From: Macrostomum lignano
Taxonomy: Eukaryota
Reading direction: 5' to 3'
Assembly (NCBI GenBank): GCA_002269645.1
Contig: NIVC01000622.1
Location: 186,001-250,000 of the forward strand
DNA length: 64,000 nt
A program made the position numbers and the translations under genes. The notes beneath the pieces are model-generated. The model was not told the origin of the DNA. It ran no database searches and saw nothing but the letters and a program-made list of their open reading frames with translations. Position 1 is the first letter of the stretch, and each line of letters begins with the position of its first letter. Positions 11,850-46,084 of the stretch are shown here, piece after piece.

Positions 11850-12070
11850 AATCATGCACAAACGAAACGACACGGCTGCTCAAGAGGCTGCATCCGGTAC
11901 ATCCGGTCCGCCTTTGATGCTGCTGACCCTCACCTCCGAGTCCGCCGGTAACCAGGTGTGCGATATCAGCCTAGCCAGCGTGTACCTGTGCGTGGACATG
12001 GGCTACCTGAAAGAGTTGGCCGAGTTTTTCATGCCCTCCGATTTAGTGCAGACTGCCAGCTCAGCGGCGG
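11850..12070 (+). CDS. VPS13: VPS13 exon (IMHKRND...VQTASSAA)
   Basis: Acceptor cgccag/, donor CGG/gtgagt; phase 2-1, fits the previous exon. Confidence 0.88.
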
Positions 12071-16332: not shown

Positions 16333-16360
16333 GCTTTCTCATGCTTCTTCATTTTAAAAG

Positions 16361-20125: not shown

Positions 20126-20376
20126 GTGCTCCGGAAACGAAGCAGTCACAGGACTCACAACCGGCCCAGTCGCAGGGCGCCCGGCCCAGCGTCGCCTCGG
20201 ACGGCTCGCCATTATCGGACGACGCCGAAGGCAGCGAAACCGGCGGCAGCGCACGCGGGAGCATCGGCATGGAGTCCAGCTCCAGCCTGCTGAAAATGAG
20301 GGTGCAGATGTCCGAGCCTCAGCTGCTGCTTGTTGAGGACCTCTCCGATCCCAATTGCAACGCTGTTGTGCTTAAT
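20126..20376 (+). CDS. VPS13: VPS13 exon (APETKQ...SEPQLLLVEDLSDPNCNAVVLN)
   Basis: Acceptor atccag/, donor AAT/gtgagt; phase 1-0; read manually. Confidence 0.9.
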
Positions 20377-20401
20377 GTGAGTATCTGATCTGCCTCTGGT
20401 T

Positions 20402-21830
20402 ACCGGTATCTCTCACCTGTTCTCTCACGGTATCTCTCACCGGTATCTCTCACCTGTTCTCTCACCTGTTCTCTCACCGGTATCTCTCACCGGTATCTCT
20501 CACCTGTTCTCTCACCGGTATCTCTCACCGGTATCTCTCACCTGTTCTCTCACCGGTATCTCTCACCTGTTCTCTCACCGGTATCTCTCACCTGTTCTCT
20601 CACCTGTTCTCCCACCGGTATCTCTCACCTGTTCTCTCACCGGTATCTATCACCGGTATATCTCGCCTGTTCTCTCACCTGTTCTCTCACCGGTATCTCA
20701 CCCGTATCTCTCACCTGTTCTCTCACATGTTCTCTCACCGGTATCTCTCACCTGTTCTCTCACCTGTTCTCTCACCGGTATCTCTCACCTGTTCTCTCAC
20801 CTGTTCTCCCACCGGTATCTCTCACCTGTTCTCTCACCGGTATCTATCACCGGTATATCTCGCCTGTTCTCTCACCTGTTCTCTCACCGGTATCTCACCC
20901 GTATCTCTCACCTGTTCTCTCACATGTTCTCTCACCGGTATCTCTCACCTGTTCTCTCACCTGTTCTCTCACATGTTCTCTCACCGGTATCTCTCAACTG
21001 TTCTCTCACATGTTCTCTCACCGGTATCTCACCGGTATCTCTCACCTGTTCTCTCACCGGTATCTCTCACCTGTTCTCTCACCGGTATCTCTCACCGGTA
21101 TCTCTCAATGTTCTTTCACATGTTCTCTCACCTGTTCTCTCACCGGTATCTCTCACCTGTTCTCTCACCTGTTCTCTCACATGTTCTCTCACCGGTATCT
21201 CTCACCTGTTCTCTCACCTGTTCTCTCACATGTTCTCTCACCGGTATCTCTCACCTGTTCTCTCACCTGTTCTCTCACATGTTCTCTCACCGGTATCTCT
21301 CACCTGTTCTCTCACATGTTCTCTCACTGGTATCTCACCGGTATCTCTCACCTGTTCTCTCACCGGTATCTCTCACCGGTATCTCTCACCTGTTCTCTCA
21401 CCGGTATCTCTCACCGGTATCTCTCACCTGTTCTTTCACATGTTCTCTCACCTGTTCTCTCACCGGTATCTCTCACCTGTTCTCTCACCTGTTCTCTCAC
21501 CGGTATCTTACCGGTATCTCTCACCTGTTCTCTCACCGATATCTCTCACCTGTTCTCTCACCGGTATCTCTCACTGGTATCCCTCACCTGTTCTCTCACC
21601 GGTATCTCACCCGTATCTCTCACCTGTTCTCTCACATGTTCTCTCACCGGTATCTCTCACCTGTGTCTCTCACATGTATCTCTCACCTGTTCTCTCACCG
21701 GTATCTCTCACCTGTGTCTCTCACATGTATCTCTCACCTGTATATCTCACGTTCTCACTTGTCCTACATTCTCACTGTCTGTCTCATCTGTATTTCTCAC
21801 CTGTCTCTCTCTCACCTGTATGTCTCACTA
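20402..21830. repeat. Compound 12-13-bp minisatellite CTCTCACCTGTT / CTCTCACCGGTAT
   Basis: About 1.4 kb of interspersed unit variants. Confidence 0.94.
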
Positions 21831-22324
21831 GTCTCCCCTATGTGTGCCTAAACTGTCTCAAATGCCTCAGTTTTTACATTTTTTAAGAGTTTTTATCCTC
21901 AATGCTACACTTTGGACTTGTTTTAAAATAGTTATAAGGACTTATGTTCCCGTACGCGGGACAATCATTTATTTGTCTTTGTATTGGTGGCGTTTACAAT
22001 TTAATGAAAGAATACACTTCTTCCATTAACTGCTCAGGTTCACTAGAATGATACTGACTTTGCATAGGCGTGGTATTTAGTTTTGCGATTTTTGCTAGAC
22101 AAAGCGGGCTTGCTGAGGATTTTAACTATGAGATATTCGGTTGGAAAAGCAAATAAAATGCAGTCTTTAGTCTTTTCTTCATTTCTCTGGGTGTAGTATT
22201 TCGATTTATTTAAATTGCATAGTGTTAGGACGATTCCCTGATGTGAATGGAGAGAATTCCTGTTTAGAATCATTTTCGTTTTTATAGAAACTCCCCTATT
22301 TTGGATATTTCTTAGTTGGAGGAA

Positions 22325-25179: not shown

Positions 25180-26885
25180 TTCCCCGAGACATTGCACAGT
25201 GGGATTTCCCTAAGACCGTGTTAAATTGGATTTCCCCAAGACCGTGTTAAATGCGATTTCCCTGAGACTGTTCACAGTGGGAGTTCCCTGTGCCTGTATA
25301 AAATGTTATTTTCCTGTGTCTGTATACAAAGGGATTTCCCTGTGCCTGTATACAAAGGGATTTCCCTGTGCCTGTATACAAAGGGATTTCCCTGTGCCTG
25401 TATACAAAGGGATTTCCCTGTGCCTGTATACAAAGGGATTTCCCTGTGCCTGTATACAAAGGGATTTCCCTGTGCCTGTATACAAAGGGATTTCCCTGTG
25501 CCTGTATACAAAGGGATTTCCCTGTGCCTGTATACAAAGGGATTTCCCTGTGCCTGTATAAAATGTTATTTTCCTGTGTCTGTATACAAAGGGATTTCCC
25601 TGTGCCTGTATACAAAGGGATTTCCCTGTGCCTGTATACAAAGGGATTTCCCTGTGCCTGTATACAATGGGATTTCCCTGAGACTGTATACAATGGGATT
25701 TCCCTGTGCCTGTATACAATGGAATTTCCCTGAGACTGTATACAATGTGATTTCCCTGAGACTGTATACAAAGGGATTTCCCTGTGCCTGTATACAATGG
25801 GATTTCCCTGTGCCTGTATACAATGGGATTTCCCTGTGTCTGTATACAAAGGGATTTCCCTGTGCCTGTATACAAAGGGATTTCCCTGTGCCTGTATACA
25901 ATGGGATTTCCCTGAGACTGTATACAAAGGGATTTCCCTGTGCCTGTATACAATGGGATTTCCCTGAGACTGTATACAATGTGATTTCCCTGAGACTGTA
26001 TACAAAGGGATTTCCCTGTGCCTGTATACAATGGGATTTCCCTGAGACTGTATACAATGGGATTTCCCTGAGACTGTATACAATGGGATTTCCCTGTGCC
26101 TGTATACAATGGGATTTCCCTGTGCCTGTATACAATGGGATTTCCCTAAGACTGTATACAATGGGATTTCCCTGTGCCTGTATACAATGGAATTTCCCTG
26201 AGACTGTATACAAAGGGATTTCCCTGTGCCTGTATACAATGGGATTTCCCTGAGACTGTATACAATGTGATTTCCCTGAGACTGTATACAAAGGGATTTC
26301 CCTGTGCCTGTATACAATGGGATTTCCCTGAGACTGTATACAATGGGATTTCCCTGAGACTGTATACAATGGGATTTCCCTGTGCCTGTATACAATGGGA
26401 TTTCCCTGAGACTGTATACAATGCGATTTCCCTGAGACTGTATACAATGGGATTTCCCTGTGCCTGTATACAATGGGATTTCCCTGTGCCTGTATACAAA
26501 GGGATTTCCCTAAGACTGTATACAAAGGGATTTCCCTGTGCCTGTATACAATGGGATTTCCCTGAGACTGTATACAAAGGGATTTCCCTGTGCCTGTATA
26601 CAATGGGATTTCCCTGAGACTGTATACAATGTGATTTCCCTGAGACTGTATACAAAGGGATTTCCCTGTGCCTGTATACAATGGGATTTCCCTGAGACTG
26701 TATACAATGGGATTTCCCTGAGACTGTATACAAAGGGATTTCCCTGTGCCTGTATACAATGGGATTTCCCTGTGCCTGTATACAATGGGATTTCCCTAAG
26801 ACTGTATACAATGGGATTTCCCTGTGCCTGTATACAATGGAATTTCCCTTGATTTCCCCAGACCTTTAGGATGGGATTTCCCCAA
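25180..26885. repeat. 26-bp minisatellite TGTATACAAAGGGATTTCCCTGTGCC
   Basis: About 60 copies estimated from length; 26-aa (3-unit) period in the ORF track. Confidence 0.96.
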
Positions 26886-26958: not shown

Positions 26959-27138
26959 GTGATCTCCCCGTGCGACATGTCGGTGGTTTATCATTCCGAG
27001 ATTGATCCGAACTCTGCAAACGTGCCGCAAAAGCAGAAGATGGCCGTAATCTGCGAAAGCATATTTGTTAATATTAGTCCGCCAGTGATTCAGACTCTGG
27101 TGAAGATTTCTTCTGTGCTGACTAATGCTCAAGCTCTG
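26959..27138 (+). CDS. VPS13: VPS13 exon (VISPCDMSV...NISPPVIQTL...AQAL)
   Basis: Acceptor gccgcag/, donor CTG/gtgagt; 60 codons. Confidence 0.9.
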
Positions 27139-27552: not shown

Positions 27553-27655
27553 GAAACCGCGGACAATGACAAACCGCCCGAGCCGAAACTCTATGAGAAC
27601 GGCTTGTGGCAGGTGCGACCGATTGAGTCTGAGAATCTGCCTTTCCTTAGCACCG
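27553..27655 (+). CDS. VPS13: VPS13 exon (ETADND...LWQVRPIESENLPFLST)
   Basis: Acceptor gtgccag/, donor CCG/gtgagt; phase 0-1. Confidence 0.85.
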
Positions 27656-30029: not shown

Positions 30030-30121
30030 ACGCAACTTCTCCCGATGGTACAGCCATGGCTGAGCAAGGCTTCGATGTTGGGGCCGCCTTGGACGAGATT
30101 GAACAGCGCCGAAAGCAGGAG
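30030..30121 (+). CDS. VPS13: VPS13 exon (ATSPDG...EQRRKQE)
   Basis: Acceptor gcgcag/, donor GAG/gtaggt; phase 1-0, restores frame. Confidence 0.82.
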
Positions 30122-30177
30122 GTAGGTTTCTGTCTTGCTTGAATTGGAATGACAGTTTTATTGATATTATTGTTTAG

Positions 30178-30645
30178 TGCACTTTTAGAGAGAGAGAGAG
30201 GCGGGCAGAGTGGGGGGGGCACCTTAAGGGAGAGAGGCGGGCAGAGTGGGTGGGGCACTTTAAGGGAGAGAGAGGCGGGCGAGTGAGGTGGGGCACTGCT
30301 AGGGAGAGAGGCGGGCAGAGTGGGTGGGGCACTTTAAGGGAGAGAGAGGCGGGCGAGTGAGGTGGGGCACTGCTAGGGAGAGAGGCGGGCAGAGTGAGGT
30401 GGGGCACTTTTAGGGAGAGAGGCGGGCAGAGTGAGGTGGGGCACTTTTAGGGAGAGAGGCGGTCAGAGTGAGGTGGGGCACTTTTAGGGAGAGAGGCGGT
30501 CAGAGTGAGGTGGGGCACTTTTAGGGAGAGAGGCGGTCAGAGTGAGGTGGGGCACTTTTAGGGAGAGAGGCGGGCGGAGTGGGGTGGGGCACTTTAAGGG
30601 AGAGAGGCGGGCGGAGTGGTGTGGGGCACTCTATGTAGAGAGGCG
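30178..30645. repeat. 37-bp minisatellite GGGAGAGAGGCGGGCAGAGTGAGGTGGGGCACTTTTA
   Basis: About 12 copies. Confidence 0.92.
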
Positions 30646-32374
30646 AGCGTAAAAATTCATTTATATTGGGAAACTTAGAAATGTTTGGGTTGTTATAGAG
30701 GCTCAGTAAGGCCAAGATTAAGAAACAAAAAATACCTATATAACCAGACGTGTTTATTAGCTTCATAATATCTTAATTGCTTGTATCTTGCTCATGATTT
30801 TGCTATCATTGTCAAGGACAGCCGGACCCTATAGTTGACCTCAATTTACTTAATTCAGTGTATTTTGTATTCGTGAATCAGTCTCAGACACGTGTGTAAC
30901 ACAAGTCAGGCAGTTATTGTGTATAATTACTAAGTCTTTTTTTAACAATGGGTCTCTCGTCGGTAACTTTGCCCTGCCTCAAAGGCACTGCGGGATGCCA
31001 AGCCTTAAGCGGCGCATTGCCGACTGAGAGAAAAAGGGAATTGTGCGCTTTTTTAAAAAAAAGATCCTACTCCTGTTCAGGAAGAATTATGGGAGCTAGG
31101 CTAAGGTATTTTCCCCATCTTCTTCTTTACGACTGGGCAAGTAAAGTCTGCTTCGCCTAAGATGAATTGTTTTGTTGTTTTGAAATGAATACAGCTCATA
31201 CTGCTATGCTAATGAAATCGATCAAATTTATTGGCGATCCCCATTATTAAAGTTTAGATTTCGCACGATTTTACAAGTTGTCACACTGAGCGCAGTAAGC
31301 TGATTGATTGAATGTCTTGCCGTCACCCTTTCATCGCTCGCTTCTTACTTTGCTTAACGCCTCCTGTGCCCAGTTCTACGAGTTTAAGTTCTCACTCAGC
31401 CCCGCGTACCACAAATCTCTTCCCACTCGCCGTGACCCTCCATGCAGCTCTCGGACCCGCTAACTGTTCCCCCTATGGTCGTACTTGTAGGAATTTGATT
31501 AGCATAAGTGGACTTCGGGAAGTGAGGTCGTCTGCTGCTACTGCTTCTGCCTTCTGCTGCTTTTGGAGGTCGAACCCCCTCCCCCATGTGTCCCTCATCG
31601 CTCTCTCTCTCCCCTCTCTCTCTCTCATCTGACGAAAGGCCACTCATGCATTCCAATAGCTGGAGACTGGGCTATGAAACGCTTGTGTGAGCCCGCGTTT
31701 GTGTGTGTGTGACTTGGCTTAAAATTGTGCTGACTGCTTCTGGGTTCGATTTAAAGCCAGGGCTTAAGACCTCTGGCCTGAGTCGGGTCAGAAATGCGAT
31801 ATGGTTTGCTCTCTTTCCCCTGCTTCCCTTATCTGGCACTGTCTCAAATAAAGCATCTTAGACGATTGAACACTGTTGACTCTCGCTTGTGAGTCTCAGT
31901 TAAAAAAGTCAACTCTATATGCATCAGTATATAAGTTTGCGGTTCATCATACCATCAACAAAATAATCATTGTATTTGTCCGTCTGATTAAAATCTTAGC
32001 ATCAACGTTAGCTTTGATTATTGAGGCATCAATTCTTTGAAACTGGCTTTCTATCGAGAAAATCGTAGCTAATTTAACACCATATTATATAACGAAGACA
32101 CAATGTAAAACAACATTTGAAGTGCGTTTCATTGTCTTGCAAAAATTAATGCAATTCTTTAGTAATAATACATGCATGCGATAAATATACATAATTCATA
32201 TACAACAGTTTCAAATTTAAAAGTTTTGTAACAAATACGCTCCAGTATATTGAAAAATATCTACTAGGACAAGAAAAACTGATTGAAATACGACGCAATG
32301 TGAATCCGATCAGTTGGTTCTTTGTTTAAAAAACCCGTCAATGGAAAATTGGACCCTGACTCACACCCACGCGT

Positions 32375-35017
32375 TTAGAGCGTGGCTTCGTTGTAACTCA
32401 CCGCCGACTCATCGTCTTCTGGCGATCGGAATGTTGACATGCGCGAAGTCCTTGGGAATGTGACCACGCTAGGGTAGAGGCTCAGGCTGCTGACGCTTGG
32501 TACCCGACTGTTTGATAGGGCCACCTGACTGCCCTGCTGATGCCGAGTGCACTGGTGCTGCTGGCTATTCAACAGCTGCAGCTGATGTTGATGCTGAAGC
32601 TGCTGCTGAAGCTGCCGTTCAACCGATGTGTCGTAGACGTTGGAGTAGCTCACACACTCTTGCGGGGTTTTGTTCAATAAGCCGCCTCGTTGGTCTTCGT
32701 TAAGAGTTTGAAAGCTGGACGAATAGTCTCGCGTGTTACTCGATGCCGTCTTCGACGCCGCCAGCTGGTCCACTGTTCTCAGCGGCATTCTGTACAGGAC
32801 CTGCTTCCAGAAGTTCTTCTTGCCGTAGCGAACTATTGACTTACTGGCTGCCGCATTGCGTCTAACCAAATTCTGCGGCAGGTGCTTAATGTTTGGAAAC
32901 AGAATATGAATCAGCCTATTGGCCTGACGGGGCTGAGTTCTGGTTAGAAAGGTGACAGTCAGTTGATAATCTGTACACACGTCCACGTCTGAGATGAAGC
33001 TCTCTGTAATCACCGCTATGACCCGTTTGCTATTCTCCACCGCGTGGCACACGGCGCTATACGTTAGTAGGCCCGGAATGCAGGCTCTGTCATGTGTGCA
33101 GAGGACGTAGGGACTCTTCCTGTTAGTTAGCTTTTCTAGTAGCACGGATATAACCCAGTCGCTGTCGCTTGGATGGAACAACACAAAAGCGTCACAGCGC
33201 TTCAGCTCACCGTTGCACTCGTCGCGATCAAACGGATGAAAGCCGAACCTAGTAAACAGACTCACCCTTGCGCAGAAAAGCAAGAAAAAGGCCAGCGTTA
33301 TCAGCGCCAAGACGCCGCTGACAGCTGACGAGCTGAGCGCCAGCTGATCGTAGCTTCGATTTGAAGACCTTGGATCGGGCCGATCGCAGAAGTCCTTCAG
33401 TCTCATTTCGAGCAGCGGCCTGTTAAATAGCCACGTTGGCTCAGCGCAGCGTATCTCGTTTTCGTGTCTCAGGTAGGGTCGCATCTTATGCAGCCATTCG
33501 CTCATCCAGCTGTTGTTACAGTGGCAGGACCAGGGATTATGATCCAATCGCATCTCTTTCAAGTGCGGAAACGTCAGCTCGACAATCTGCCTGTCCAGCG
33601 CGGTGAACAGATTGTGATTGAGGTTGATTACTTCCAGGCGTCTTAGCTTGTTAAAAAACTTTACAGGCATTGTTTCAATGCCGGTGCCTCGCAGATCCAA
33701 CGTTTGCGCATCTTTGTAGACGCTTGGCATACCTGGCAGGCTTCTTGACAGGCGGCTGGCGCTAAAGTTAAATCGGTACACGTATTGATCTGGCAAGTCT
33801 GTCATTTCTCTTCTGTGCAGCAGGCGGCCTAGGTTCACACCAAAGCAATCGACTGATATAGTCTTACGCCAAGGCTCTTCGGTACATGTACACTGTTCGT
33901 TGTTGCACTTGTCCCGGCATACGAGGTCTTCTCGCTTCAGTAGTAGTTTGAATGCCGAGTTGAATACTGACTGATAGTTTAGACTCAATGGCTTCACGCA
34001 GTACGGTAGAGCCATCGGATCCGGTAAGAAATGAGAAATGTTACTTGCTGATACGTACATGTTGTAGTCCAAACAGTCGCACTCCAGGGGGTTCTGATGC
34101 AAACTGATGATGGTGATTGCATGCCGGGCGCCCAGCACTCTGATTGTCTTGTCGTCCATGTTCCATCCTCTAATCAGATCTATCAGGTGTCTCACCCTGT
34201 TGTTAGTCAGGCTCAGGACTAGGTTGATTCTAGTGACAAGTTCTTTTGTCCAGCGAATGTGAGTCGCAAAATTCTGTCTTGGGTCTGGACTGCCTTCCGT
34301 GTCATCAAAGCGTTGAATTCGATTGTGATCGAGCAATATACGCAGCTTCTCCTCGCTGTGCATTGCTCGAATCTTAAGTGGCCAGTTGGCAAGAGCTTCC
34401 AATTTGTTGTACGATAAATCGATGTAGTTTAAGTAGTTGGCAGACGATTCAAATGCCTTTGAAGAGACATAGCGTATTTGATTGTGTATGATGCTGAGCT
34501 TCTGCAAGGACGGTGTAGCTAGACAGTAGTCTGTCAGATTCACTAACAAATTTCTGTCTAGTACGATCTCTTTGAGCTCTTTGAACGGACTAAACATCCT
34601 TGGTGGAAGCTGTCTGATTCTATTGTCGGTCAGGTTGAGATGGGTCAGCTTGGTGAGCAGTGCTAGCTTGGGTAGAACGTCCTGCATTCGCTCCACCCCA
34701 GACATGACTAGCACGTTGAGATCGACCAGAGCTGGGCATTCGATCAGCCTGGCAACCAGCTCGCCGCTGCCCTGTGCGTAGCCGCAGTCCAGGCTGAGAT
34801 GGTACTGCGCATAAGCGTAGCGAAACTCGCACTGTCTGCACTGCGTTGGGCAATAGCGCCTGCACTGCACCAGCCGGTCCTTCAGACTGGCTGACCCCGT
34901 TGCGCTGCCTACAATGGCAGATTGTAGCGACGGCAGATGCAGTGACAGCAGCTGCAACACTAGCAATAGTAGCTTCCCCGATTGCAGCCGTTCCATGTTC
35001 TGTTGAAGATCAGTCAT
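32375..35017 (-). CDS. Toll-like receptor, multi-cysteine-cluster (protostome-type), intronless, 880 aa
   Basis: Hydrophobic signal (LLLLVLQLLSLHL), LRRNT (CPTQCRQC), LRRs (LTHLNLTDNRI, LKEIVLDRNLL, LNYIDLSYNKL), LRRCT (NPLECDC..C), second LRRNT (CRDKC..CTC), LRRs, LRRCT (HNPWSCHC..IRCAEP), TM helix (about 33255-33335), TIR (CDAFVLF, HDRACIPG, SKRVIAVI, FWKQV; about 32790-33200), Gln/Ser-rich tail. Confidence 0.95.
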   Translation of the reverse strand: MTDLQQNMERLQSGKLLLLVLQLLSLHLPSLQSAIVGSATGSASLKDRLVQCRRYCPTQCRQCEFRYAYAQYHLSLDCGYAQGSGELVARLIECPALVDLNVLVMSGVERMQDVLPKLALLTKLTHLNLTDNRIRQLPPRMFSPFKELKEIVLDRNLLVNLTDYCLATPSLQKLSIIHNQIRYVSSKAFESSANYLNYIDLSYNKLEALANWPLKIRAMHSEEKLRILLDHNRIQRFDDTEGSPDPRQNFATHIRWTKELVTRINLVLSLTNNRVRHLIDLIRGWNMDDKTIRVLGARHAITIISLHQNPLECDCLDYNMYVSASNISHFLPDPMALPYCVKPLSLNYQSVFNSAFKLLLKREDLVCRDKCNNEQCTCTEEPWRKTISVDCFGVNLGRLLHRREMTDLPDQYVYRFNFSASRLSRSLPGMPSVYKDAQTLDLRGTGIETMPVKFFNKLRRLEVINLNHNLFTALDRQIVELTFPHLKEMRLDHNPWSCHCNNSWMSEWLHKMRPYLRHENEIRCAEPTWLFNRPLLEMRLKDFCDRPDPRSSNRSYDQLALSSSAVSGVLALITLAFFLLFCARVSLFTRFGFHPFDRDECNGELKRCDAFVLFHPSDSDWVISVLLEKLTNRKSPYVLCTHDRACIPGLLTYSAVCHAVENSKRVIAVITESFISDVDVCTDYQLTVTFLTRTQPRQANRLIHILFPNIKHLPQNLVRRNAAASKSIVRYGKKNFWKQVLYRMPLRTVDQLAASKTASSNTRDYSSSFQTLNEDQRGGLLNKTPQECVSYSNVYDTSVERQLQQQLQHQHQLQLLNSQQHQCTRHQQGSQVALSNSRVPSVSSLSLYPSVVTFPRTSRMSTFRSPEDDESAVSYNEATL

Positions 35018-36234
35018 TCACCGACGTCTAGGACTTCGAATTGCCGGGCGATTCGTTCATTTCGCAGTTTCCTTGGAGACCTGTGTGTGTGCGTTTCTGT
35101 GCGTTGCTTCGTTCTCGATCTCCGGTGTTTTTTAATTATACGCTTCAATGGCTTCTGTAACTGTCGCAGTAGGAATTGACTTCGAAGTCTCAATATTGAC
35201 TTAGCTCTTCAATTTTTTGCCGGAGCTGTCTCTTTTTCCTAAGACCTCTCGCAACCTGAAGTGTCACCTGCTTTTAAAAGCTGATTTTTTCCCAAAATCG
35301 GGCCAAGTCTGAGCGGTGGCTCCCACTCCCTGCCGTCCATCCCCAATCCTTCTCCTCCCTCTCTGTCCCTGCCTCCCCAGTGCAGGTTTTGCAATGCTTC
35401 GCTTCACTGGTTTGATTGGACTTCCATGCGCCTGTCCAATCAAGCTTTAGTCTCTTTCTATTGCCACGCCACGAGAAACTCTTGGCCGCCTGCTGCACAC
35501 TTTCTCGGACTCGGGGGGAGCGAGAGTTCTTTCGTGCTTTTAAAATTTTTTAGGAAGTTTTTTTTCTTCTATCGACTTTAAGCAGCGCCCCGGTTGCATT
35601 GTTTGGGTCAGCTGGAATGTGTTTGACCGCGCAACTTTCACTTTGTATTGAATAGCCACGTCCGCTAGCTCAAGATGCCTGTCGCTTTACATTCACTGGC
35701 TAGAGCTACACGCACTTTCAGGATCCCTATTTTAACTTTCTATAGTTTATAATTTGAGGTTAACCGCTAATAAAAGATCTTTATTGGCTATACATGTAGA
35801 CTTTTCTCTGAGCTGCAAGGCATCGGATTTTATTGTCGCGCACATCGGTACAGTCGTCTTTCTGGCGGGACTCGTGTATCTCACAGTCGCCAGCGCATTT
35901 CCGTGACTGCTGATGCAGAATTTCTCAATGCGGATTCTTGCCACCGCGAGTCTATTACTTGTTATAATGTCTCTCACTTCCGTATTCCATGTCTGTTAAG
36001 CATCAGGCTACATGACTAAACCAAGTTTAACTGCTGTAACAGCCCTTCTCTCTGTTGTCATTGTCATTCATTCTCAATGCCGTTTTAGGAAGAACTTTAT
36101 TGACTTTATCGCCAAAAAGTGTATTTTTGGTACCTATTGTACAAAACAGGTAAGAAAAGAGTAGAGAAAAGAAGAGAGAGAGAGAAAACGAAATGAGAAA
36201 AGGGTAGCCAGTTGAGACAGAATGAAGGAGACTG

Positions 36235-36665
36235 GTGAGAGAAAGGGTGAGAGAGGATCAGATAAGAGAGACAGGTGAGATCGAGAGATGGAGACAGGTG
36301 GGATCGAGAGGGGAGACAGATGAGATCGAGAGGGGGAGACAGGTGAGATCGAGAGATGGAGACAGGTGGGATCGAGAGGGGAGACAGATGAGATCGAGAG
36401 GGGGAGACAGGTGGGATCGAGAGGGGAGACAGATGAGATCGAGAGGGGGAGACAGGTGGGATCGAGAGGGGAGACAGGTCAGATTGACAAGGGGAGACAG
36501 ATGAGATCGAGAGGGGGAGACAGGTGGGATCAATAGGGAGAGACAGGTGGGATCGAGAGGGGAAGACAGGTAGGAGCTAGAGGGGGAGACAGGTGGGATC
36601 GAGAAGGAGAGACAGGTGGGATCGAGAGGGGAGACAGGTAGAAGCGAGATGGGGGAGACAAGTGG
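36235..36665. repeat. Minisatellite GAGACAGGTGGGATCGAGAGGGG
   Basis: About 17 copies; same core as 3259-4340. Confidence 0.9.
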
Positions 36666-37689
36666 AAGAAAATGGGAGTCAGTTAAAATAAATCCAATGT
36701 AGGGCTCAAATTAGGGAGCAGAGCTATAGTTTAAAAAATGGATAAATGATGAGTTGCTTTTATGAAGCAGTATCATATATTTTAGATTCTAGTCAAATCA
36801 TAAGATTATTATAATATTAATCATATACTTAAATTCTATACAAATACTTAAATCTGAAATAAAAGGTGTTCAACTTCATATGTATGCAAGCTTATTCATT
36901 TGGCAAGTGCGTTTTGCCCCCCCCTCCTCATCGCTAATAGCTGGTGCTAATAGTTAAGCACTGTTTGATTTTCTCATCTGCGATATTTGACTACTCCAAT
37001 TCAGGAGAGGGGGGGGTTAACTTGCCGCTGTGCAGCCCGGGTCGATAATGCATAATTGGCATAATTTGCCAACCAAACCTGGCCGATGTAATGTGCACTT
37101 TAATGAGTAGCACCCTGGGAGTTTGGCAGGTGCACCGCGTGTGTGTGTGCCGTACGGATAAATTTAGAGGAGAATAATAAAATAAAAATACTATGAATTA
37201 TCATTATTGGTCCTTACGCGCGGGGTGTCCGGTGGTCCGGGTTGGCCACTGGATCTGCGTATATATTAGCTCCATATTATAAAATATAAAAAACTCTTAA
37301 ATAGCTTCGTAGTGCCCGAGGAATATAGTTAAACGGGATAATTTATGGACTTCCTGGCAAGGCGAGACTCGCCCTTCTTCCCACAGTATTAGCTTTCTTC
37401 TTCTTGGCTATCCCTGACTGTCTCTCTTTCGACTGGATATCTTAATTTCCAATAAAACCAAGAAAACGTACCATTTCTTTTGTAAGAGTTCTCTTTGTGT
37501 ACACGTGCTTGGTTTTTTAGCTTGGTTAACTGTTTTTGAACCAAGTTTCATTGTAACCATATTTGCAAATATGACAACAGACCTCAAAAAGGACCTCCGA
37601 AGACTGTATGTCGTTGAAACAGCTTTTCGGGTTATAATTATCTTATATGTTGAAGCAAGCATCAAATAAGTGCTGCAATATTATTTGTT

Positions 37690-38500
37690 GCGATCACAGA
37701 TAATTAGCACATCATAAATGACGTCAGATGTTGTTGCAATCGCGGATAACTAGCACACCATAAATGACGTCAGATTTTTTTGCAATTACGGATAACTAGC
37801 ACATCATAAATGACGTCAGATTTTTTTGCAATTACGGATAACTAGCACATCATAAATGACGTCAGATTTTTTTGCAATTACGGATAATTAGCACATTATA
37901 AATGATGTAAGATTTTGTTGCAATCGCGGATAACTAGCACACCATAAATGACGTCAGATGTTGCAAATAAGGATAATTAGCACATCATAAATGACGTCAG
38001 ATGTTGTTGCAATCGCGGATAACTAGCACACCATAAATGACGTCAGATGTTGCAAATAAGGATAATTAGCACATCATAAATGACGTCAGATGTTGTTGCA
38101 ATCGCGGATTATTAGCACATTATAAATGATGTAAGATTTTGTTTCAATCGCGGATAATTAGCACCCCATAAATGACGTAAAGATATTATTGCAATCGCGG
38201 ATAATTAGCACACCATAAATGACGTCAGATGTTGCAATTAAGGATAATTAGCACATTATAAATGATGTAAGATTTTGTTGCAATCGCGGATAATTAGCAC
38301 CCCATAAATGACGTCAAATGTTGTTGCAATTATCGGTCGCAAGAAAATCGGTCCAGCCGTTTTTGCTAAAATCGATCACATACCCACATACCTACCGACA
38401 GACCATTTTTAGTATATGGAGATAACTGACGTCAGATGTTTTTGCAATCGCGGATAATTAGCACATTATAAATGATGTAAGATGTTGCATTCGCGGACAA
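37690..38500. repeat. About 46-bp minisatellite GGATAATTAGCACATCATAAATGACGTCAGATGTTGTTGCAATCGC
   Basis: About 16 copies, interrupted at about 38336-38423. Confidence 0.93.
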
Positions 38501-39254
38501 GCAAAACATTACACGGAACTCAGTAGTTGAAGCATACGTCAGATAAAGAAGCACAATAACTACACCGGATGCTGTTGCAATCTCTCAAATTGACACTAGA
38601 TAGACCGACCTAGCGCTAAGTACCATCATATAGCAACTCAGTTTGTTGAAAAAAATTACTGAAACATCACATACTGCCGAGACAGTCCAGACGCTTCTGG
38701 CCTATGATAACTTGGCAATAACTTCGATCGCAGCTTTGTGGACTGTTGCAACGGCACAGATATTTTTATGCTGATAACTTCGGCTCGGCAGAACTTTGAA
38801 ACTCTATCCGACACACATTGTCGAGAGTCTGTCCCGCCGTGTTCTAACACACTTGCGCTTCTGCTGCTAGCCCGGTCTGGGCTATATAAGTGTGCCTTCC
38901 CTCATCCTTGACCCCCGCCTCTACTTTCATTATTCATGCTAAATTTGTTCCTCTTTTGCCCCGGCTCCAGCCTTCAGTGGTCTGTCTCGATTATTTTCCT
39001 ACACATCGGCAATAGCAGAAACAACAACAGCTAGCTGGCGTCCACCATTCGCCCCCTCCCACTGTATCCTGCTGTTAAATATTTAATTTGACAGAATAAT
39101 TTTATCTATATAATATTACTTACATGTGAAAGGCTTTTCTGGAATTCATTCTGTTATGCTTTCAGCTTTGACTGTCGAGCGCGCCCCTATTCTTTCATGC
39201 TGTCTGCTTGCTTTTCTATCTTCTGGCGATACATTTCTGAAAAAAAGTGCAGCT

Positions 39255-39500
39255 TTTCTTGAAAGACGGGGGGTTCGATTCTTGACTCACTCGGAGCAAT
39301 TTGTGCCCTTAAGAAAGATTCTTAACTCTGCATTGCTTCAGTTCAACCAGTTGTAAAATGGGTGCCAGCGTTAGCTGGGGTAATTTAGGGTATGTGTGGC
39401 GATCCATCAGTCCTTGGACTGAACAGCTTTCAGATGCGCCGCGCAATAGCTGCAGCTGAGCTGTCGGTTCCACATCTGGCCCAATTGAGGCAGGTGTAAT
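39255..39500 (+). mobile_element. tRNA-headed CORE-like SINE copy
   Basis: B box GGTTCGATTC at about 39272; core TTAACTCTGCATTGCTTCAGTTCAACCAGTTGTAAAATGGGTGCC shared with 61450-61580 (-); 3' body shared with 29380-29610. Confidence 0.75.
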
Positions 39501-40699
39501 CAATTATTATTTAGCGAAGAAGTCACACTGTTGCCCGCCAATGTCTAATTTAACGCCCACCCTAACTTGATGTCTCATACCTGAATCTAATGCTCTAATT
39601 TCCTAATTTTGCCCTTCAACTCTTCATAGTTAATGCGCCAACCCCACTGTAAATGTGACGTTGAAATCCTCAATTTAAATGTGCCTCTTGTCTCTTCCTA
39701 ACGGACTCAAAAAGGGTTTCACATCTTGCAAAATGTGTGAAAACCCAAAAGGAAATTGGATTTTCCGTTGTCTTTTAAAGAAACAGCAAGCATTGCCCAG
39801 GTATTTTGAGCGGGGATGATCTGAGTGGCCTTTGATTAGCTAGTGGATAATTGGATCTCAAATTTGAGCAGTTTAATGAGTCCCTTGGTCATAATAACTT
39901 CTACTAGGCGTTGAAGCTAGCTAATTCGAAAAAGTAAACAGTTGGAATATTGTTGCGCATATTTGTATTCTACGAACGCTCCGATTCCAAACATGGAATT
40001 TGGATGTGAATTATGATGCAGCAGCCACCTTCCGTGCAGCTGTGTTGCGAGGTCCCTATGGGAGTCGGACGCACACTGAATGGGCGTTTTTTATATGTGC
40101 CAAAATTAGACAAATTAGCTGGTGTTGCACACACATGCATACAAGCCTGCCATTATGCACTAATGTTGTTTTATGCGTTCCTATTTGTATCGCAGCTCCA
40201 CTGGAAATAATATAATCATATTTTATTCTAATTAATAATTTATTAGCCTGAAAAGAAGTCGCAACCACCTGATGTTCGCTCGCATTTTATGGTTCTGTTG
40301 GACAAGCCTCTCTTGGGTAGTTGCTATGGGAGAGCGGAAAAGTCTCAAAGATCTTTGGTAGTTTGTGTGACCTTTCCATCAACTAGTCCTAGGTGAATAA
40401 GATAGATAACTAGATGTATAATTTTTTGTATCTGTGTGTGCGTTCTGTAGCCTTGTGAATAATTTAAATTGAGTGTGCCCTAATGTTGACTGCCAAGTAG
40501 AGATGTGGAGTCTCATATCATGTATCGGTTTGATAATCAGTTTGCTCCACTGCTCTCGCTTCTCTGCATGCCAACTTAACTTGGTCTCAGCCCTGAGAAA
40601 TAGTAAAGGAAGGATTATATAGTTTACAGTAGACATGACTAAGCTTTTGTAATGCAAGTGTACATGTAACTTACAGGGTAGAAGGGAGGGCCAGCTATG

Positions 40700-41445
40700 G
40701 AGGGTAAAGAGATGGCAAGATACTGAGGGTAAATAGAGGGTAAGATATTGATGGTAAAGAGAGGGTAAGATATTGATGGTAAAGAGAGGGTAAGATATTG
40801 ATGGTAAAGAGAGTAGACACGGGGTGTAAAGATGGTATACACGGAGGGTGTAAAGATGGTATACACGGAGGGTGTAAAGATGGTATACACGGAGGGTGTA
40901 AAGATGGTATACACGGAGGGTGTAAAGATGGTATACACGGAGGGTGTAAAGATGGTATACACGGAGGGTGTAAAGAGGGTAGACACGGGGGTGTAAAGAT
41001 GGTATACACGGAGGGTGTAAAGGGGGTAGAGACAGAGGGTGTAAAGAGGGTAGACACGGAGGGTGTAAAGAGGGTAGACGCGGAGGGTGTGAAGAGGGTA
41101 GACACGGAGGGTGTGAAGAGGGTAGACACGGAGGGCGTGAAGAGGGTAGACACGGAGGGTGTGAAGAGGGTAGACACGGAGGGTGTGAAGAGGGTAGACA
41201 CGGAGGGTGTGAAGAGGGTAGACACGGAGGGCGTGAAGAGGGTAGACACGGAGGGTGTGAAGAGGGTAGACACGGAGGGTGTGAAGAGGGTAGACACGGA
41301 GGGTGTGAAGAGGGTAGACACGGAGTGTGTAAAGAGGGTAGACACGGAGGGTGTGAAGAGGGTAGACACGGAGGGTGTAAAGAGGGTAGACACGGAGGGT
41401 GTGAAGAGGGTAGACACGGAGTGTTTAAACAGGGTATACTCGGAG
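40700..41445. repeat. 24-bp minisatellite GTAGACACGGAGGGTGTGAAGAGG (three graded variants)
   Basis: About 30 copies. Confidence 0.94.
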
Positions 41446-43144
41446 GGTGTAGTCTCAGAGTGTAGACTCGAAACTGAGCCCGAAGAAGCTAGGGATGTAG
41501 ATAGAAAATCATTCTTTAAATAATGAACAATAATTAATCCATTTTTCCTAGAAAATCTGCAATTTCTGCCACAATCAATTTTAAAATTGACTTCCATTGG
41601 TTAGTCAGATTTGCAAGACAATGAAATTTACTCTTCAAATTGTCAATGGAATTATCTTAAACATGCGGGACCTGTTCGACCCGTATGTGAGCTTTGATAA
41701 ATTATACAATAATTCTAAATATTGGGCAATTTTCCAGCATTTCTCTCTCTTTCAAAAGTCCCTCCCTCCCAAATCCGTCCCCTTATAGAAGCAGATATTT
41801 GAGCAATAACGGGATAACAGGCCTATCTGTTCTACCCCGCATTGCAGGGCGGATAATTTGCCGAGAAAATCTATCTATCGCCATCAGCCAGCCTCTTTTT
41901 ATCGTAGTAGACGAGTCTTCATGAGCTCTGCCTGTCTGTCTGTCTTCTGCTTCGGGCTTTAATCAATTCTCAGGCGACTATGAGTCCTTTCTAGCCTTTC
42001 TTTCCACTTTCTACCCCACAGCAGGACCCTTTTGGACTGTATTATATAAAAAAAGTTTCAAATTTGAGTATCGGCTTCTTTGGACAGGAGCTGAAATCGG
42101 ATCTCGTTGACACTGAGCTGATTTTGAGCAAATGCTGCTTCATTCTGATTGATAAAAATCGTCTTTTTGGGAGGGGTGGGGGGCTAAAGACACTGACTGA
42201 TGCCTGAAAATGAGATTAATTTGATTTTTCTGAACTTTATTATTAAAGCTACTCTGTTCGGTGCTCTACCAGGTAACTGAGTATTTTTTAATATTTCTAT
42301 AAGTTTATGAGTTAATAGTTGACTTTATCCATGTTTTAACAGTTTTTAATATTTGTTTATGTTTTAATACACTTAGAATTGCCGTCGGAGAGCTTATTGC
42401 TATTAGCCCTGTTAAATAAAATGACACAGTGGCTTGCTCTGAGTCTGAAAAAGTGCTCAGAATTTGCTGATTTCTCATCGCCATGGAAACGTGTGCGTGT
42501 ATGTTTAACATTTGGACGAAATCCATTGATTCTTGGTCACATTGTGCTGAAGTGAAATATTATTTTTGCTTCATTATCGGCGAAAAATGAAGACGATAAT
42601 TTTTAGGCCCTAATTGGGACAGCCGACAGAGAATCAGGACGCAAGCAGAGTTACGGTTTCCGGCCCTAATCAATCGATTTTTGGATCGATATTTTTTGCC
42701 TATGGTTTTTTTTTCTTTTCGCCTGCAGATTAACTCATGCACTTAAAAGTTTCGGTTAGTTAGTTGGCAAATTATTACGAAATCATTAATTGGATTATTG
42801 TTACAGAATTTAGGTATTAATAAAACTACTTGGTGTCTTGAAGCTTGCTCTTGATGCAAGTTCCGTCGGTGACCAATAGGTCAGGAGGGCTCTGGCTTAA
42901 ACAGCTCCTTTTTCTTCTCTTTCAAACCCGGCTGCTTCGTTAGCGCGCGAGTCAATGATGGTTGGAGGGTGGATGTGGCGGGAGGTGCCTGAGGATGCAG
43001 TGGAGATGCTGTGACCGGCAGTTCCTTTTACACGCGTTTCGCATCCGGCTGATTCTTAATGTCCGCGTCCTTGTAGTCAGCTGCGCCATGGAGTGCTGGA
43101 GCTAGTGCTTGGACTGTCTAAATTGTCATAGAGTATCTGTTTGG

Positions 43145-43341
43145 TCGGTCTGTCTGTCTGTCTGTTTTAGTGTCTGTCTGACTGTGTGTCTTGTCTGACT
43201 GTGTGTCTGTCTGTCTGTCTGTGTGTGTCTGTCTGTCTGTGTGTCTGTCTGTCTGTCTGCCTGTCTGTCTGTCTGTTTTAGTGTCTGTCTGTCTGACTGT
43301 CTGTCTGTCTGACTGTCTGTCTGCCTGTCTGTCTGTCTGCC

Positions 43342-43392
<51 letters not shown>

Positions 43393-43405
43393 GTGTCGGT
43401 CAGAA

Positions 43406-43440
<35 letters not shown>

Positions 43441-43483
43441 GTGTCTGTCTGTCTGTCTATCTGTATGTTTGCCTGTGTCTTAG

Positions 43484-43544
<61 letters not shown>

Positions 43545-43605
43545 GCCTGTCTGTCTGTCTGTCTGTCTGTCTTTGTCTCTATCTATTTGTATATCTATCT
43601 AACAG
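43145..43605. repeat. (TCTG)n microsatellite
   Basis: Direct reading. Confidence 0.96.
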
Positions 43606-44559
43606 AAGTTATGATTATTATAGTAGAGGATAGCACAGAGGCTGTACGCGGTAAGAGTTTTTAGTACTCCAAGCTCTGGTTCAAAGTCTTCCCTGGCTAT
43701 GCTGTCCCCCAGACTCCTCCTCATCAGTTCTGAGTTGAATAGATTTTTTCAGCTACTCTTCGGCAAGCGGCTACCAAAGCTTTTTATTCACGCGGACTAG
43801 AATAGACTTCTTCTTCTAGAGGCAGGGTGAAGGAGCCAAGGCGCATTTCGGTTTGTCGCTGCATCAGTGCCGGATTATTATTAGAAGCTTTTTGTTTTTC
43901 TTCTATTAAACTTGAGCAAACAGGGGTCCTCGTAAAGTGATTTAGTTCAACCTTGCTCAGGGACTGTTATGGCTATTGGACTAGAAACCTAGACTGCCGG
44001 ATTTATCAAAGAATTGCTAACCATTCCATAAGGGTTGGTCCAAATTTTAAAGTGATTTGTAACGAAGAATTTTTATTATAGCAGTTTTCGAAGGTTAAGC
44101 TAAGTTGGTAGGGGTTAGCACGCCACTGAATATGCGGGTTACTATCTATATGAGTCCCTATATGAATTCATAGTTGTCTAGGTAGTGGCCTCTCCCAGTC
44201 CATCGACCCGATCCAGAGGTCCACAGCCCAGACTTTGTGACCACTGGGCTTATACTTTTTGCTACATCTTTCTTATACACATGGGATTGAATTGTTTTGC
44301 TTCTAAACAGACCTGGTTACCCCAGTGCCCAGCCTTGTGCCAATAAGTCCTCTCATTCCCCTTGAGCTTGCAAGCTCAAATCTTTTGTTTGAATTTCAGT
44401 TTTGTTTGACTTGATCTGTTAGTTTTATTGAACCAGTTTGGGTGTCTTTGGATAAGTTGATTAGGTTTTGATTAAAATTCAAACTCATAACTTTATTATC
44501 CTGCCTCATGGTGCTGATGGAATTGCTATCCTGTATGCATTTTTGTCCGCTTATCCACC

Positions 44560-45155
44560 GGAAACTTCAGATCCTGAAGCCATACACTCCAGTATAACAG
44601 TGGCATTATTGCCTCTGAAACTTCAGGTCCTGAGGCTACCCGCTCCAGTATAAAAGCAACTAGAAGGCCTCGAAACTTCAGGGCCTGAGGCTACCCACTC
44701 CAGTATAAAAGCAACTAGAAGGCCTCTGAAACTTCAGGGCCTGAGGCTACCCACTTCAGTATAAAAGTATAAAAAGGCCTCTGAATCTTAAGGGCTGAGG
44801 CTACCCACTCCAGTATAAAAGCAACTAGAAGGCCTCTGAAACTTCAGGGCCTGAGGCTACCCACTCCAGTTTAAAAGGCCTCTGAAACTTCAGGGCCTGA
44901 GGCTACCCACTCCAGTTTAAAAGGCCTCTGAAACTTCAGGTCCTGAGGCTACCCACTCCAGTATAAAAGGCCTCTGAAACTTCAGGTCCTGAGGCTACCC
45001 ACTCCAGTATAAAAGGCCTCTGAAACTTCAGGTCCTGAGGCTACCCACTCCAGTATAAAAGTATACAAAAGGCCTCTGAAACTTCAGGTCCTGAGGCTAC
45101 CCACTCCAGTATAAAAGTATACAAAAGGCCTCTGAAACTTTAGGGCCTGAGGCTA
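44560..45155. repeat. About 46-bp minisatellite GGCCTCTGAAACTTCAGGTCCTGAGGCTACCCACTCCAGTATAAAA
   Basis: About 11 copies. Confidence 0.92.
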
Positions 45156-45232
45156 ATTACTCTAATTTATGAGCTTCGCAAAACTAGAAGCTTTATTAAA
45201 ATGCTATTGTTTTCATTCCCACACATTGGCAG

Positions 45233-45352
45233 ATGCAAGTGACCGTATCTCAAATCAAACTGATCTTCAACATTGAAGTTGGACCAAAAACTGTGCCAAT
45301 GCTTATTCTGGAAAGTAAAGTGACCGGCACAATGACTAACTGGTCCGCTAAT
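45233..45352 (+). CDS. VPS13: VPS13 exon (MQVTVSQI...EVGPKTVPMLILES...NWSAN)
   Basis: Acceptor ttggcag/, donor AAT/gtaagt; 40 codons. Confidence 0.92.
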
Positions 45353-45478: not shown

Positions 45479-45601
45479 TCGGAGCTCACCCTCACGATAG
45501 ACACAGAGATGGCCTACTACAACGAGGCGCATGACTACTGGGAGCCATTCCTGGAGCCAGTGGACCTGCAACCACCGAGGCCGTTCCAACTGGTCTTCCA
45601 G
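45479..45601 (+). CDS. VPS13: VPS13 exon (SELTL...AYYNEAHDYWEPFLEPV...VFQ)
   Basis: Acceptor cccgcag/, donor CAG/gtgagc; YYNE..WEP signature. Confidence 0.93.
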
Positions 45602-46084
45602 GTGAGCCAACGTGCTGTCTGCTTTCCTGCCCTAACTGCATTATCCCTATTCACTGTGCATGCTTCATAGCTTTGATTGCTGAAAGTTATTTAGTAATTG
45701 AATCTTTGTACAATTTCGCTAGTTTGGACTCTCTTTGAGCTCGGTGCCTGTGCTCCACTGCTCCTGTCCTTGGCCATTTTCACCCGGAAATCATTAGTGG
45801 CGTAATTGGACCGTTTTCTTTGGGAATTCCGGTATTTCTTGAAGATTTGCCCGCAAGGACAAAGGAAAGCAGTGCAGGAAAAAAGTGGACTTGGTTTTCT
45901 TCGCTCTGTCACGCTAACCATGAAATAAGTTAACAAAGATGGCCGAGTATTGCGTAACTTTTAGGGCTCTGATGATGACTGACCGTGACAGTTGCTGGTC
46001 AATTAGGCCGTCTATTGTTCCTGGGTTTTTATCTATTTTGATTGACGGATCATCACTCATCTTCGGCCTCTCATTGGCTCTTTA

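Follow-up and report, generated by a model that had tools for sequence, protein, structure and literature searches.

Organisation of the locus

The window analysed here, a stretch of DNA of 64 kb, carries part of a VPS13 gene on the plus strand and, antisense within one intron of that gene, a single open reading frame (ORF) for a predicted Toll-like receptor (TLR). The host exons, the host intron and the nested gene are located as follows.

11850..12070, plus strand: VPS13 exon, upstream in the phase-consistent chain
20126..20376, plus strand: VPS13 exon, upstream in the phase-consistent chain
26959..27138, plus strand: VPS13 exon, phase 0 to 0 (splice chain, VPS13C alignment)
27553..27655, plus strand: VPS13 exon ending in phase 1, with a conserved LW...FL motif; absent from the first-pass annotation
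30030..30121, plus strand: last VPS13 exon before the host intron, starting in phase 1 and ending in phase 0
30122..45232, plus strand: host intron of VPS13, 15,111 bp, 22.5% tandem repeats, with the TLR as its sole long ORF
32375..35017, minus strand: Toll-type receptor gene, a single 880-codon ORF, coordinates including the TAA stop at 32375-32377
45233..45352, plus strand: first VPS13 exon after the host intron, phase 0 (AG/GT borders, VPS13C alignment)
45479..45601, plus strand: VPS13 exon, next after 45233..45352 (splice chain, VPS13C alignment)

Seven plus-strand exons with canonical AG/GT borders and consistent phases join into one open frame, which is contiguous with residues 2038-2344 of human VPS13C. 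In phmmer searches these exons matched human VPS13C (1e-106 overall) and VPS13A (3e-84) in colinear stretches, and three exon groups matched the Pfam profile VPS13_M at profile positions that rise along the window (688-757 for exon 45233..45352 together with the next exon). By sequence similarity, the host is a VPS13A/C-like bridge-like lipid transfer protein gene, but the 64-kb window stops short of both its 3′ end and the part that encodes the N-terminal chorein region. A word-indexed homolog search with the concatenated VPS13 exons returned no matches, and the same type of search with the VPS13 C-terminus returned two Logan fragments only, at 36-39% identity. Searches of the 64-kb window for Rfam families and tRNA genes found none.

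Since the seven exons splice into one VPS13C-colinear peptide, the TLR ORF sits antisense within the 15,111-bp intron, 2,253 nt from exon 30030-30121 and 10,215 nt from exon 45233-45352. The splice chain and the alignment therefore bear out the antisense nesting described in the first-pass annotation, together with its statement that the two flanking exons join in phase 0: both have AG/GT borders and they are adjacent in the VPS13C alignment, at human residues ~2250-2275 and ~2275-2315. The alternative raised at that stage, that the flanking exons belong to two separate genes, is contradicted by the one contiguous alignment to VPS13C 2038-2344. Both flanking exons named earlier are retained, but exon 27553-27655 had not been listed, and it is needed for the frame of exon 30030-30121. 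The latter had been considered as a possibly spurious exon, since its 5′ phase conflicts with the strong donor at 27138. With the intervening exon 27553-27655 the frame is restored and the conflict disappears. The host intron had also been called by far the largest of the gene. It is indeed the largest of the mapped introns at 15,111 bp, and 'by far' amounts to a factor of about two over the next ones (8,055 and 6,582 bp).

Domain structure of the nested receptor

The nested ORF runs uninterrupted on the minus strand for 880 codons from ATG to TAA, and it is not extendable in the 5′ direction because a stop codon lies directly upstream. The chance expectation for 880 stop-free codons is ~4e-19. 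A better Kozak context is present at the second Met (aa 8). From its N- to its C-terminus the predicted protein comprises a signal-like stretch, an LRRNT, leucine-rich repeats (LRRs), an LRRCT-LRRNT pair, further LRRs, a second LRRCT, a transmembrane (TM) helix, a TIR domain and a Q-rich tail, encoded as follows.

34919..35017, minus strand: N-terminus with signal-peptide-like stretch (aa 1-33), read from the sequence
34784..34864, minus strand: LRRNT with the N-terminal cluster C52/C56/C60/C63/C78, of which C56, C60 and C63 are invariant in 9 sequences
34088..34735, minus strand: first LRR block, aa 95-310 (Pfam; model pLDDT 80-95)
33845..34087, minus strand: internal LRRCT (C313/C315/C340/C367) and LRRNT (C371/C376/C378/C391), all eight cysteines invariant
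33533..33790, minus strand: second, short LRR block, aa 410-495, with LRR_8 at aa 438-494
33386..33532, minus strand: membrane-proximal LRRCT, C498/C500/C524/C544 (cysteine pattern, family alignment)
33263..33331, minus strand: TM helix, aa 563-585 (hydrophobicity, alignment, model)
32783..33196, minus strand: TIR domain, aa 608-745, with box 1 DAFVLF, box 2 LCTHDRACIPG and box 3 FW
32378..32782, minus strand: C-terminal tail, aa 746-880, Q-rich and predicted to be disordered, missing from aligned relatives

Several lines of evidence recover these domains. Pfam profiles matched the LRRs (LRR_8 at 1.6e-18, including aa 438-494, and LRR_4 at 7e-12) and the TIR domain (PF01582, 27.4 bits against a cut-off of 21.3), and eight LxxLxLxxNxL-type motifs were counted in the ectodomain. 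Searched alone against the PDB, the TIR domain matched the TIR structures of TLR2 (crystal chain 1FYW, 1.5e-9), MyD88 and IL-1RAcP, with values from 1.5e-9 to 8e-6. NCBIfam was of no help, since its matches were all to bacterial LRR models and below threshold. The strongest hydrophobic stretches of the protein are aa 14-33, which are signal-like and followed by SLQSA-IVG as read from the sequence, and aa 563-585, the TM helix, where the only 19-mer window of strong hydrophobicity outside the N-terminus is found (Kyte-Doolittle 2.5). A juxtamembrane HPFDxDECxGE motif that is conserved in the family follows the TM helix (aa 594-604).

The AlphaFold model of the protein has a pLDDT of 70, rising to 80-95 in the LRR and TIR parts, and places a helix at residues 553-582. 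Its LRR solenoid matches Toll ectodomains, with Aedes Toll5A, Drosophila Toll-Spatzle and C. elegans TOL-1 as the closest (structural matches to 7B1C at 1.3e-15, 4LXR at 1e-14 and 8SUF at 6e-12). The initial reading of a complete Toll-type receptor encoded by an intact, intronless ORF of 880 codons is thus upheld by the ORF itself, the Pfam LRR and TIR matches and the cysteine pattern. Each of the elements then claimed (LRRs, cysteine clusters, TM and TIR) was recovered by Pfam, PDB matches, hydrophobicity or the model, and the profile check of the ORF suggested with that reading yielded both LRR and TIR matches.

Receptor class and relatives

P-type, or multiple-cysteine-cluster (mcc), TLRs are defined by at least two LRRCT modules, commonly accompanied by LRRNT modules (PMC8609888). 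The nested receptor has two of the former (C313-C367 and C498-C544) and two of the latter (C52-C78 and C371-C391), and its internal LRRCT directly followed by an LRRNT is the defining feature of the mcc/P-type class. The mcc (Toll-type) architecture recognised at first pass has held up, with the clusters being kept in the family alignment and mcc Tolls being the best structural matches.

HMMER searches with the full-length protein returned 5,714 matches, 63 of them at E<=1e-30. Many are colinear with aa ~55-750, the relatives being 650-770 aa in length. Within this short Toll family the identity to the nested receptor is 25-32%, and the HMMER search found no ortholog above 32%; an exact look-up of the protein found no identical record. 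In an alignment of nine sequences, all 14 cluster cysteines, the HPFDxDECxGE motif and the core TIR residues are invariant, which argues that the structure has been maintained in the nested receptor. Few relatives are named among the 30 TLR matches in a cluster look-up, and those that are (Paralvinella, Arenicola 'TLR13', Lingula and insects) are protostome Tolls. For the short single-ORF family that aligns end to end, the named members found are annelids only. Each relative examined consists of one uninterrupted ORF, in places tandemly arrayed; one of them, P0014, sits in assembly GCA_029979725. Metagenome matches came from contigs with the prefixes Ga0056xxx and Ga0209xxx, which may resemble those of gutless marine oligochaete symbiont metagenomes.

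A crude neighbour-joining (NJ) tree without support values, and with the clade beta and gamma reference sets left out, placed the nested receptor with short mccTLRs, near Arctia and Lingula Tolls, and separated it from bat TLR13. On the evidence of sequence comparison, the nested gene is a divergent member of a fast-diversifying short mcc-TLR family (P-type, probably clade alpha).

Its closest counterparts are spiralian short mcc TLRs such as those of Paralvinella palmiformis (KAK2163172) and Arenicola marina ('TLR13', UCK81512), which have the same domain order, are colinear from end to end, consist of a single ORF and share with it all cluster cysteines and the HPFDxDECxGE motif. The identity to the annelid sequences is, however, only 25-29% (family median 29%), and the nested receptor differs from the spiralian proteins in that its first LRR block carries 13 inserted residues and that it has a unique 135-aa Q-rich tail. 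It branches at the base of the short mcc family in the crude NJ tree and, unlike it, the short mcc relatives examined lie away from VPS13. The short spiralian family can be compared with the molluscan 'SPP' class.

Drosophila Toll, Aedes Toll5A and C. elegans TOL-1 likewise combine a two-block ectodomain and internal cysteine clusters with a TIR domain, but classical P-type Tolls are larger (~1,000-1,400 aa), have far more LRRs and are ~15-24% identical to the nested receptor. The best sequence matches in the PDB are to vertebrate TLRs, namely TLR3 over LRRCT-TM-TIR (7e-21) and the TLR2 TIR (1.5e-9, in an alignment that pairs boxes 1 and 2). In contrast to the nested receptor, however, vertebrate TLRs are V-type, with a single cysteine cluster and without the internal LRRCT-LRRNT pair (PMC8609888).

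Origin of the nested arrangement

Taken together, the locus is likely to contain a functional and independently transcribed short mcc Toll-type gene, as predicted from its sequence, and this gene lies within a VPS13A/C-like host, in a long intron. In Drosophila, ~6-10% of genes are nested, and nested genes typically originate from short duplicates inserted into long introns (PMC3786989, PMC3814207, PMC5174743). The rarity implied by the first-pass annotation is not borne out by these frequencies, and because intron-nested genes are common in animals, the TLR-in-VPS13 arrangement is correct but ordinary. Comparable cases are Drosophila 2mit in tim2 and the LRRTM genes in alpha-catenin introns, in which a short gene whose product is an LRR membrane protein likewise lies on the opposite strand of a long host intron (PMC3786989, PMC3933685), although both host and guest genes are others than VPS13 and TLR. 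The most likely route here is that a duplicated member of the family landed at the DNA level in the long, repeat-rich VPS13 intron, in keeping with the typical origin of nested genes (PMC5174743). For host and guest alike the nesting is likely to be neutral, with some transcriptional interference at the very most, as the two genes are transcribed in opposite directions.

It had also been suggested that the TLR is a retrocopy, i.e. that the processed mRNA of an intron-containing parent was reverse-transcribed into the VPS13 intron. Its intronless coding region and its position in an intron that belongs to a different gene, a common landing site, would be compatible with this. Every relative examined is, however, a single ORF, so that intronlessness is the normal state of the family rather than a mark of retroposition, and nothing points to a parent gene with introns. 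Furthermore, there is no A-run of at least 8 in the 2.25 kb from the stop codon to the intron end, the first AATAAA occurs 1,142 nt downstream of the stop, and no direct repeats bracket the gene. Such hallmarks could be lost in an old retrocopy, yet with neither a poly(A) remnant nor flanking repeats we consider retroposition very unlikely. A search around the gene for flanking direct or inverted repeats, target-site duplications and terminal repeats found none, and capture by a transposon was rejected as its hallmarks are missing.

Functional coupling of the two genes, with co-regulation or antisense interference and a nesting kept by selection, appears less likely still. Endolysosomal contact sites are where VPS13 proteins act and some TLRs signal, which would favour such a link. 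Interference can also result where convergent or antisense transcription crosses a host intron (PMC3192792, PMC5174743). On the other hand, nested gene pairs in Drosophila are generally functionally unrelated (PMC3814207). When the VPS13 exon peptides were searched by tblastn against the loci of 84 relatives (flanks of up to 10 kb, most contigs being short), there were no matches; with VPS13 exons at none of these 84 loci, the nesting is not family-wide.

The least credible of these alternatives is that the nesting is an assembly artefact, produced by a misjoin via tandem repeats, or a contaminant segment. The arrangement is read from a single assembly, minisatellite arrays flank the TLR gene on either side (30194-30645 and 36268-36665), and 42% of the 64-kb window is tandem repeat, the kind of sequence that misleads assemblers. 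Yet the window is free of Ns, similar tandem repeats occur across its whole length, beyond the supposed joins, and to either side of the ORF the unique sequence is of the same composition as the remaining intron (introns in the window have ~40-45% GC). The TLR also matches the VPS13 exons in GC3 (0.62 and 0.66, respectively) and in CpG observed/expected ratio (0.89 and 0.91), which argues against contamination and for a gene resident in the same genome.

Predicted function and implications

The nested receptor would be a type I membrane protein. Binding of a ligand, which may be a Spatzle-like cytokine or a microbial molecule, to its two-part LRR ectodomain would bring two receptors together, and their paired cytoplasmic TIR domains may then recruit a TIR adaptor (MyD88-like) and trigger NF-kB-type immune or developmental responses.

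With this locus the short mcc Toll family gains one divergent member, and the arrangement is a clear-cut case of an immune receptor gene lying antisense inside a large housekeeping gene. Intron-nested single-exon genes are easily missed or merged in annotation, so that counts of TLR repertoires can be biased. The understanding of TLRs, VPS13 and nested genes is otherwise unchanged, unless the host lineage is thought to be devoid of TLRs; in that case the gene could have escaped surveys because it is hidden in an intron. We see only the slightest chance, below that of any alternative discussed above, that the host belongs to a lineage reported to be without canonical TLRs, e.g. a flatworm such as Macrostomum, whose genome resembles the window in repeat richness and GC content, or that the nesting of the TLR in VPS13 is conserved and functionally coupled.

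Box 2 of the nested TIR domain reads HDRACIPG in place of the commoner RDFxPG, and a CAG/CTG-type repeat (32574-32615) lies within the region encoding the C-terminal tail. Either the HDRACIPG box 2 or the disordered tail of 135 aa could alter the signalling of the nested receptor.

The host gene and the nested reading frame

The gene surrounding the Toll-like receptor (TLR) ORF is a plus-strand VPS13A/C-like gene. Translations of its exons match the Pfam domain VPS13_M at rising profile positions (139-211, 225-406 and 688-757), and the concatenated exon peptides align with human VPS13C (1e-106) and VPS13A (3e-84) in colinear blocks that reach the C-terminal region. A word-indexed protein search returned almost no VPS13 homologues for the same peptides that gave 1e-106 against VPS13C in the PDB sequences; negatives from such searches are unreliable for concatenated divergent eukaryotic exons. 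Seven exons with canonical AG/GT borders were mapped around the TLR, and their phases chain without a break.

VPS13 exons mapped around the TLR (all with AG/GT borders and in the phase chain)
11850-12070, plus strand, VPS13 exon
20126-20376, plus strand, VPS13 exon
26959-27138, plus strand, VPS13 exon
27553-27655, plus strand, VPS13 exon
30030-30121, plus strand, VPS13 exon starting in phase 1
45233-45352, plus strand, VPS13 exon
45479-45601, plus strand, VPS13 exon

Spliced together, these exons encode a peptide that aligns in a single stretch with residues 2038-2344 of human VPS13C. The first-pass annotation had joined exons 30030-30121 and 45233-45352 in phase 0 and placed the TLR antisense between them. 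Borders and phase chain bear out this junction, and the antisense position within a VPS13 intron is confirmed, as both flanking exons belong to one VPS13C-colinear splice product. The small exon 27553-27655, missing from that annotation, carries the conserved LW..(x)..FL motif of human VPS13A and VPS13C, and it is because this exon precedes it that exon 30030-30121 is in frame. Exon 20126-20376 contains a long Ser/Asp/Glu/Gly-rich low-complexity stretch, the poor alignment of which to human VPS13C suggests a lineage-specific disordered insertion.

The host intron (30122-45232) measures 15,111 bp, and the other mapped introns 8,055, 6,582, 2,374, 414 and 126 bp; further downstream, no unmapped gap between recognisable exons reaches ~6 kb. 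Between exon 30030-30121 and the TLR stop codon there are 2,253 nt; on the other side, 10,215 nt separate the TLR start codon from exon 45233-45352. The entire 64-kb window falls inside this single VPS13 gene, and no second nested gene was seen in it. Outside the TLR, the host intron consists of unique, AT-richer DNA and six minisatellite or microsatellite arrays, tandem arrays making up 22.5% of its length. Tandem repeats are unusually dense throughout, with TRF masking 41.8% of the window (for example 12930-13940, 15380-16530, 20380-21880, 25200-26850, 43144-43572, 46000-47100 and 56100-59200), and most VPS13 introns are filled by minisatellites and by microsatellites with tetranucleotide units, among them (GTCT)n and (TCTA)n.

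Between 30,122 and 45,232 there is one long non-repetitive ORF, the TLR (32375..35017, minus strand; 880 amino acids from ATG to TAA), and the chance probability of a stop-free run of 880 codons is ~4e-19. In a stop-to-stop scan the open frame began exactly with the first methionine, so that the coding region cannot extend further upstream. The Kozak context of the in-frame Met8 (AACATGG) is better than that of the first methionine, and Met8 may therefore be the true start. A 10-codon upstream ORF (ATGAACGAA...TAG; 35028-35060, minus strand) ends 8 nt before the TLR ATG.

Domain architecture of the receptor

Pfam detected leucine-rich repeats (LRR_8, 1.6e-18; LRR_4, 7e-12) and a TIR domain (PF01582, 27.4 bits against a gathering score of 21.3). 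Among PDB sequences, the top phmmer match was human TLR3 (7e-21), the alignment running continuously from the last LRRs through the LRRCT and membrane span into the TIR domain. The cytoplasmic part alone, residues 590-760, matched best the TLR2 TIR crystal chain 1FYW (1.5e-9), followed by the TIR domains of MyD88, IL-1RAcP, TLR6 and TLR1. In the alignment with 1FYW, box 1 reads DAFVLF in the TLR and DAFVSY in TLR2, and box 2 LCTHDRACIPG and LCLHKRDFIPG, respectively; box 3 is the FW at residues 735-736. Hydropathy revealed a signal-like N-terminal hydrophobic stretch (residues 14-33) and a sole strong transmembrane segment (residues 563-585). The cysteines form four clusters.

Cysteine clusters of the TLR
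C52, C56, C60, C63, C78: LRRNT
C313, C315, C340, C367: LRRCT
C371, C376, C378, C391: second LRRNT, directly after the first LRRCT
C498, C500, C524, C544: membrane-proximal LRRCT

Two LRRCT modules together with LRRNTs are the published definition of a P-type, or multiple-cysteine-cluster (mcc), TLR (PMC8609888), which this protein fits. An AlphaFold2 model, built from an input alignment of nine sequences, has a mean pLDDT of 70, with the LRR and TIR parts at 80-95 and the tail below 50. Its best PDB matches are mcc Toll ectodomains, those of Aedes Toll5A (1.3e-15), of Drosophila Toll-Spatzle (1e-14) and of C. elegans TOL-1 (6e-12). The architecture is complete for a Toll receptor of probable type I topology and the structural residues are conserved, and the Toll-type layout of LRRs, cysteine clusters, membrane span and TIR proposed earlier proved correct in every element that could be tested.

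Relatives of the receptor

No identical copy of the protein is on record by exact look-up, and a word-indexed search gave nine matches, all distant. An exhaustive HMMER search of 1.84 billion representatives yielded 5,714 matches, 63 of them at E<=1e-30 and none above 32% identity. Many of the top matches are proteins of 650-770 amino acids that align in one unbroken stretch over residues ~55-750. The named sources among the best are the annelids Paralvinella palmiformis and Arenicola marina ('TLR13'); Lingula and insects appear lower down, and the remainder come mostly from unannotated ENA and JGI assemblies.

In the nine-sequence alignment, none of the 14 cysteines in the internal and flanking clusters varies, and the juxtamembrane motif HPFDxDECxGE (residues 594-604) and core TIR residues are likewise invariant; judged from this alignment, the fold-determining residues are kept at ~25% overall identity. 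The TLR differs from its relatives by a 13-residue insertion in the first LRR block and by a 135-residue, Q-rich C-terminal tail (32378-32782, minus strand) that is predicted to be disordered and has no counterpart in the eight aligned relatives. Part of the tail is encoded by a CAG/CTG-type repeat (32574-32615), and it may therefore have grown by repeat expansion. Family members share a median identity of ~29% with one another, and their identity to the window protein is ~25%; a crude neighbour-joining tree places the TLR at the family base, beside classical Tolls and apart from a vertebrate TLR13.

Origin of the nesting

The nesting more likely arose when a duplicate was inserted at the DNA level into a long intron, as is usual in the formation of nested genes (PMC5174743). 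The earlier suggestion that the TLR may have been retroposed into the intron found no support. Between the stop codon and the intron end, the TLR strand contains no run of 8 or more A, the first AATAAA lies 1,142 nt downstream of the stop, and no direct or inverted repeats were found bracketing the gene. Its relatives are likewise intronless, two of them standing in tandem at one locus, so that the lack of introns is a family trait and not a mark of retroposition. A contaminant origin is disfavoured, and the TLR seems to be resident in this genome, because its GC3 (0.62) and CpG o/e (0.89) match those of the neighbouring VPS13 exons (0.66 and 0.91), in an intron of 40-45% GC.

None of the 84 examined loci with family members has VPS13 exons nearby. 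As their flanks are short and include no ortholog, this shows only that the association with VPS13 is not a family-wide feature.

Biological setting

About 6-10% of Drosophila genes are nested (PMC3786989, PMC3814207), and among the known cases are several LRR membrane proteins encoded within the introns of large genes (PMC3786989, PMC3933685). Protostomes widely possess mccTLRs, with strong expansions of TLR families in trochozoans (PMC8609888, PMC10279657), and TLRs have been reported missing in Platyhelminthes, Xenacoelomorpha, Gastrotricha and some other groups (PMC8609888). The nearest named relatives of the TLR are annelid, which, at 25-29% identity, hints weakly at a spiralian possessing TLRs as the source. 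Nested genes and mccTLRs both being common, the case is an ordinary one: a known class of receptors gains a new and rather divergent member, and its genomic arrangement is a common one.

By analogy with established TLR biology, a ligand would drive dimerisation of the ectodomain, TIR-TIR contacts in the dimer would recruit a MyD88-type adaptor, and this would lead to an NF-kB-type output. Insect mcc Tolls have the cytokine Spatzle as ligand, and other TLRs bind microbial molecules directly. Antisense nesting could also permit transcriptional interference (PMC3192792, PMC5174743).

Further family members

Scanning of JGI metagenome contigs brought up 500 stretches coding for relatives of the TLR at 25-30% identity. 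In the loci kept, the match nearly always covers most of the protein unbroken, and these relatives therefore also appear to be single ORFs. Their number suggests that short mccTLRs have expanded very strongly in the host animals behind the samples (loci L005-L084); the contig prefixes Ga0056xxx, Ga0209xxx and Ga0049xxx may be those of symbiont metagenomes from gutless marine oligochaetes. Two family members stand in tandem 5.5 kb apart in one ENA assembly (locus L002, 10001-12211 and 17728-19644), and at another locus of the same assembly (L004, 2274-6479 and 10001-12277) 3.5 kb separate a family member from the pol ORF of an LTR retrotransposon with RVT_1, RNase H and integrase domains.
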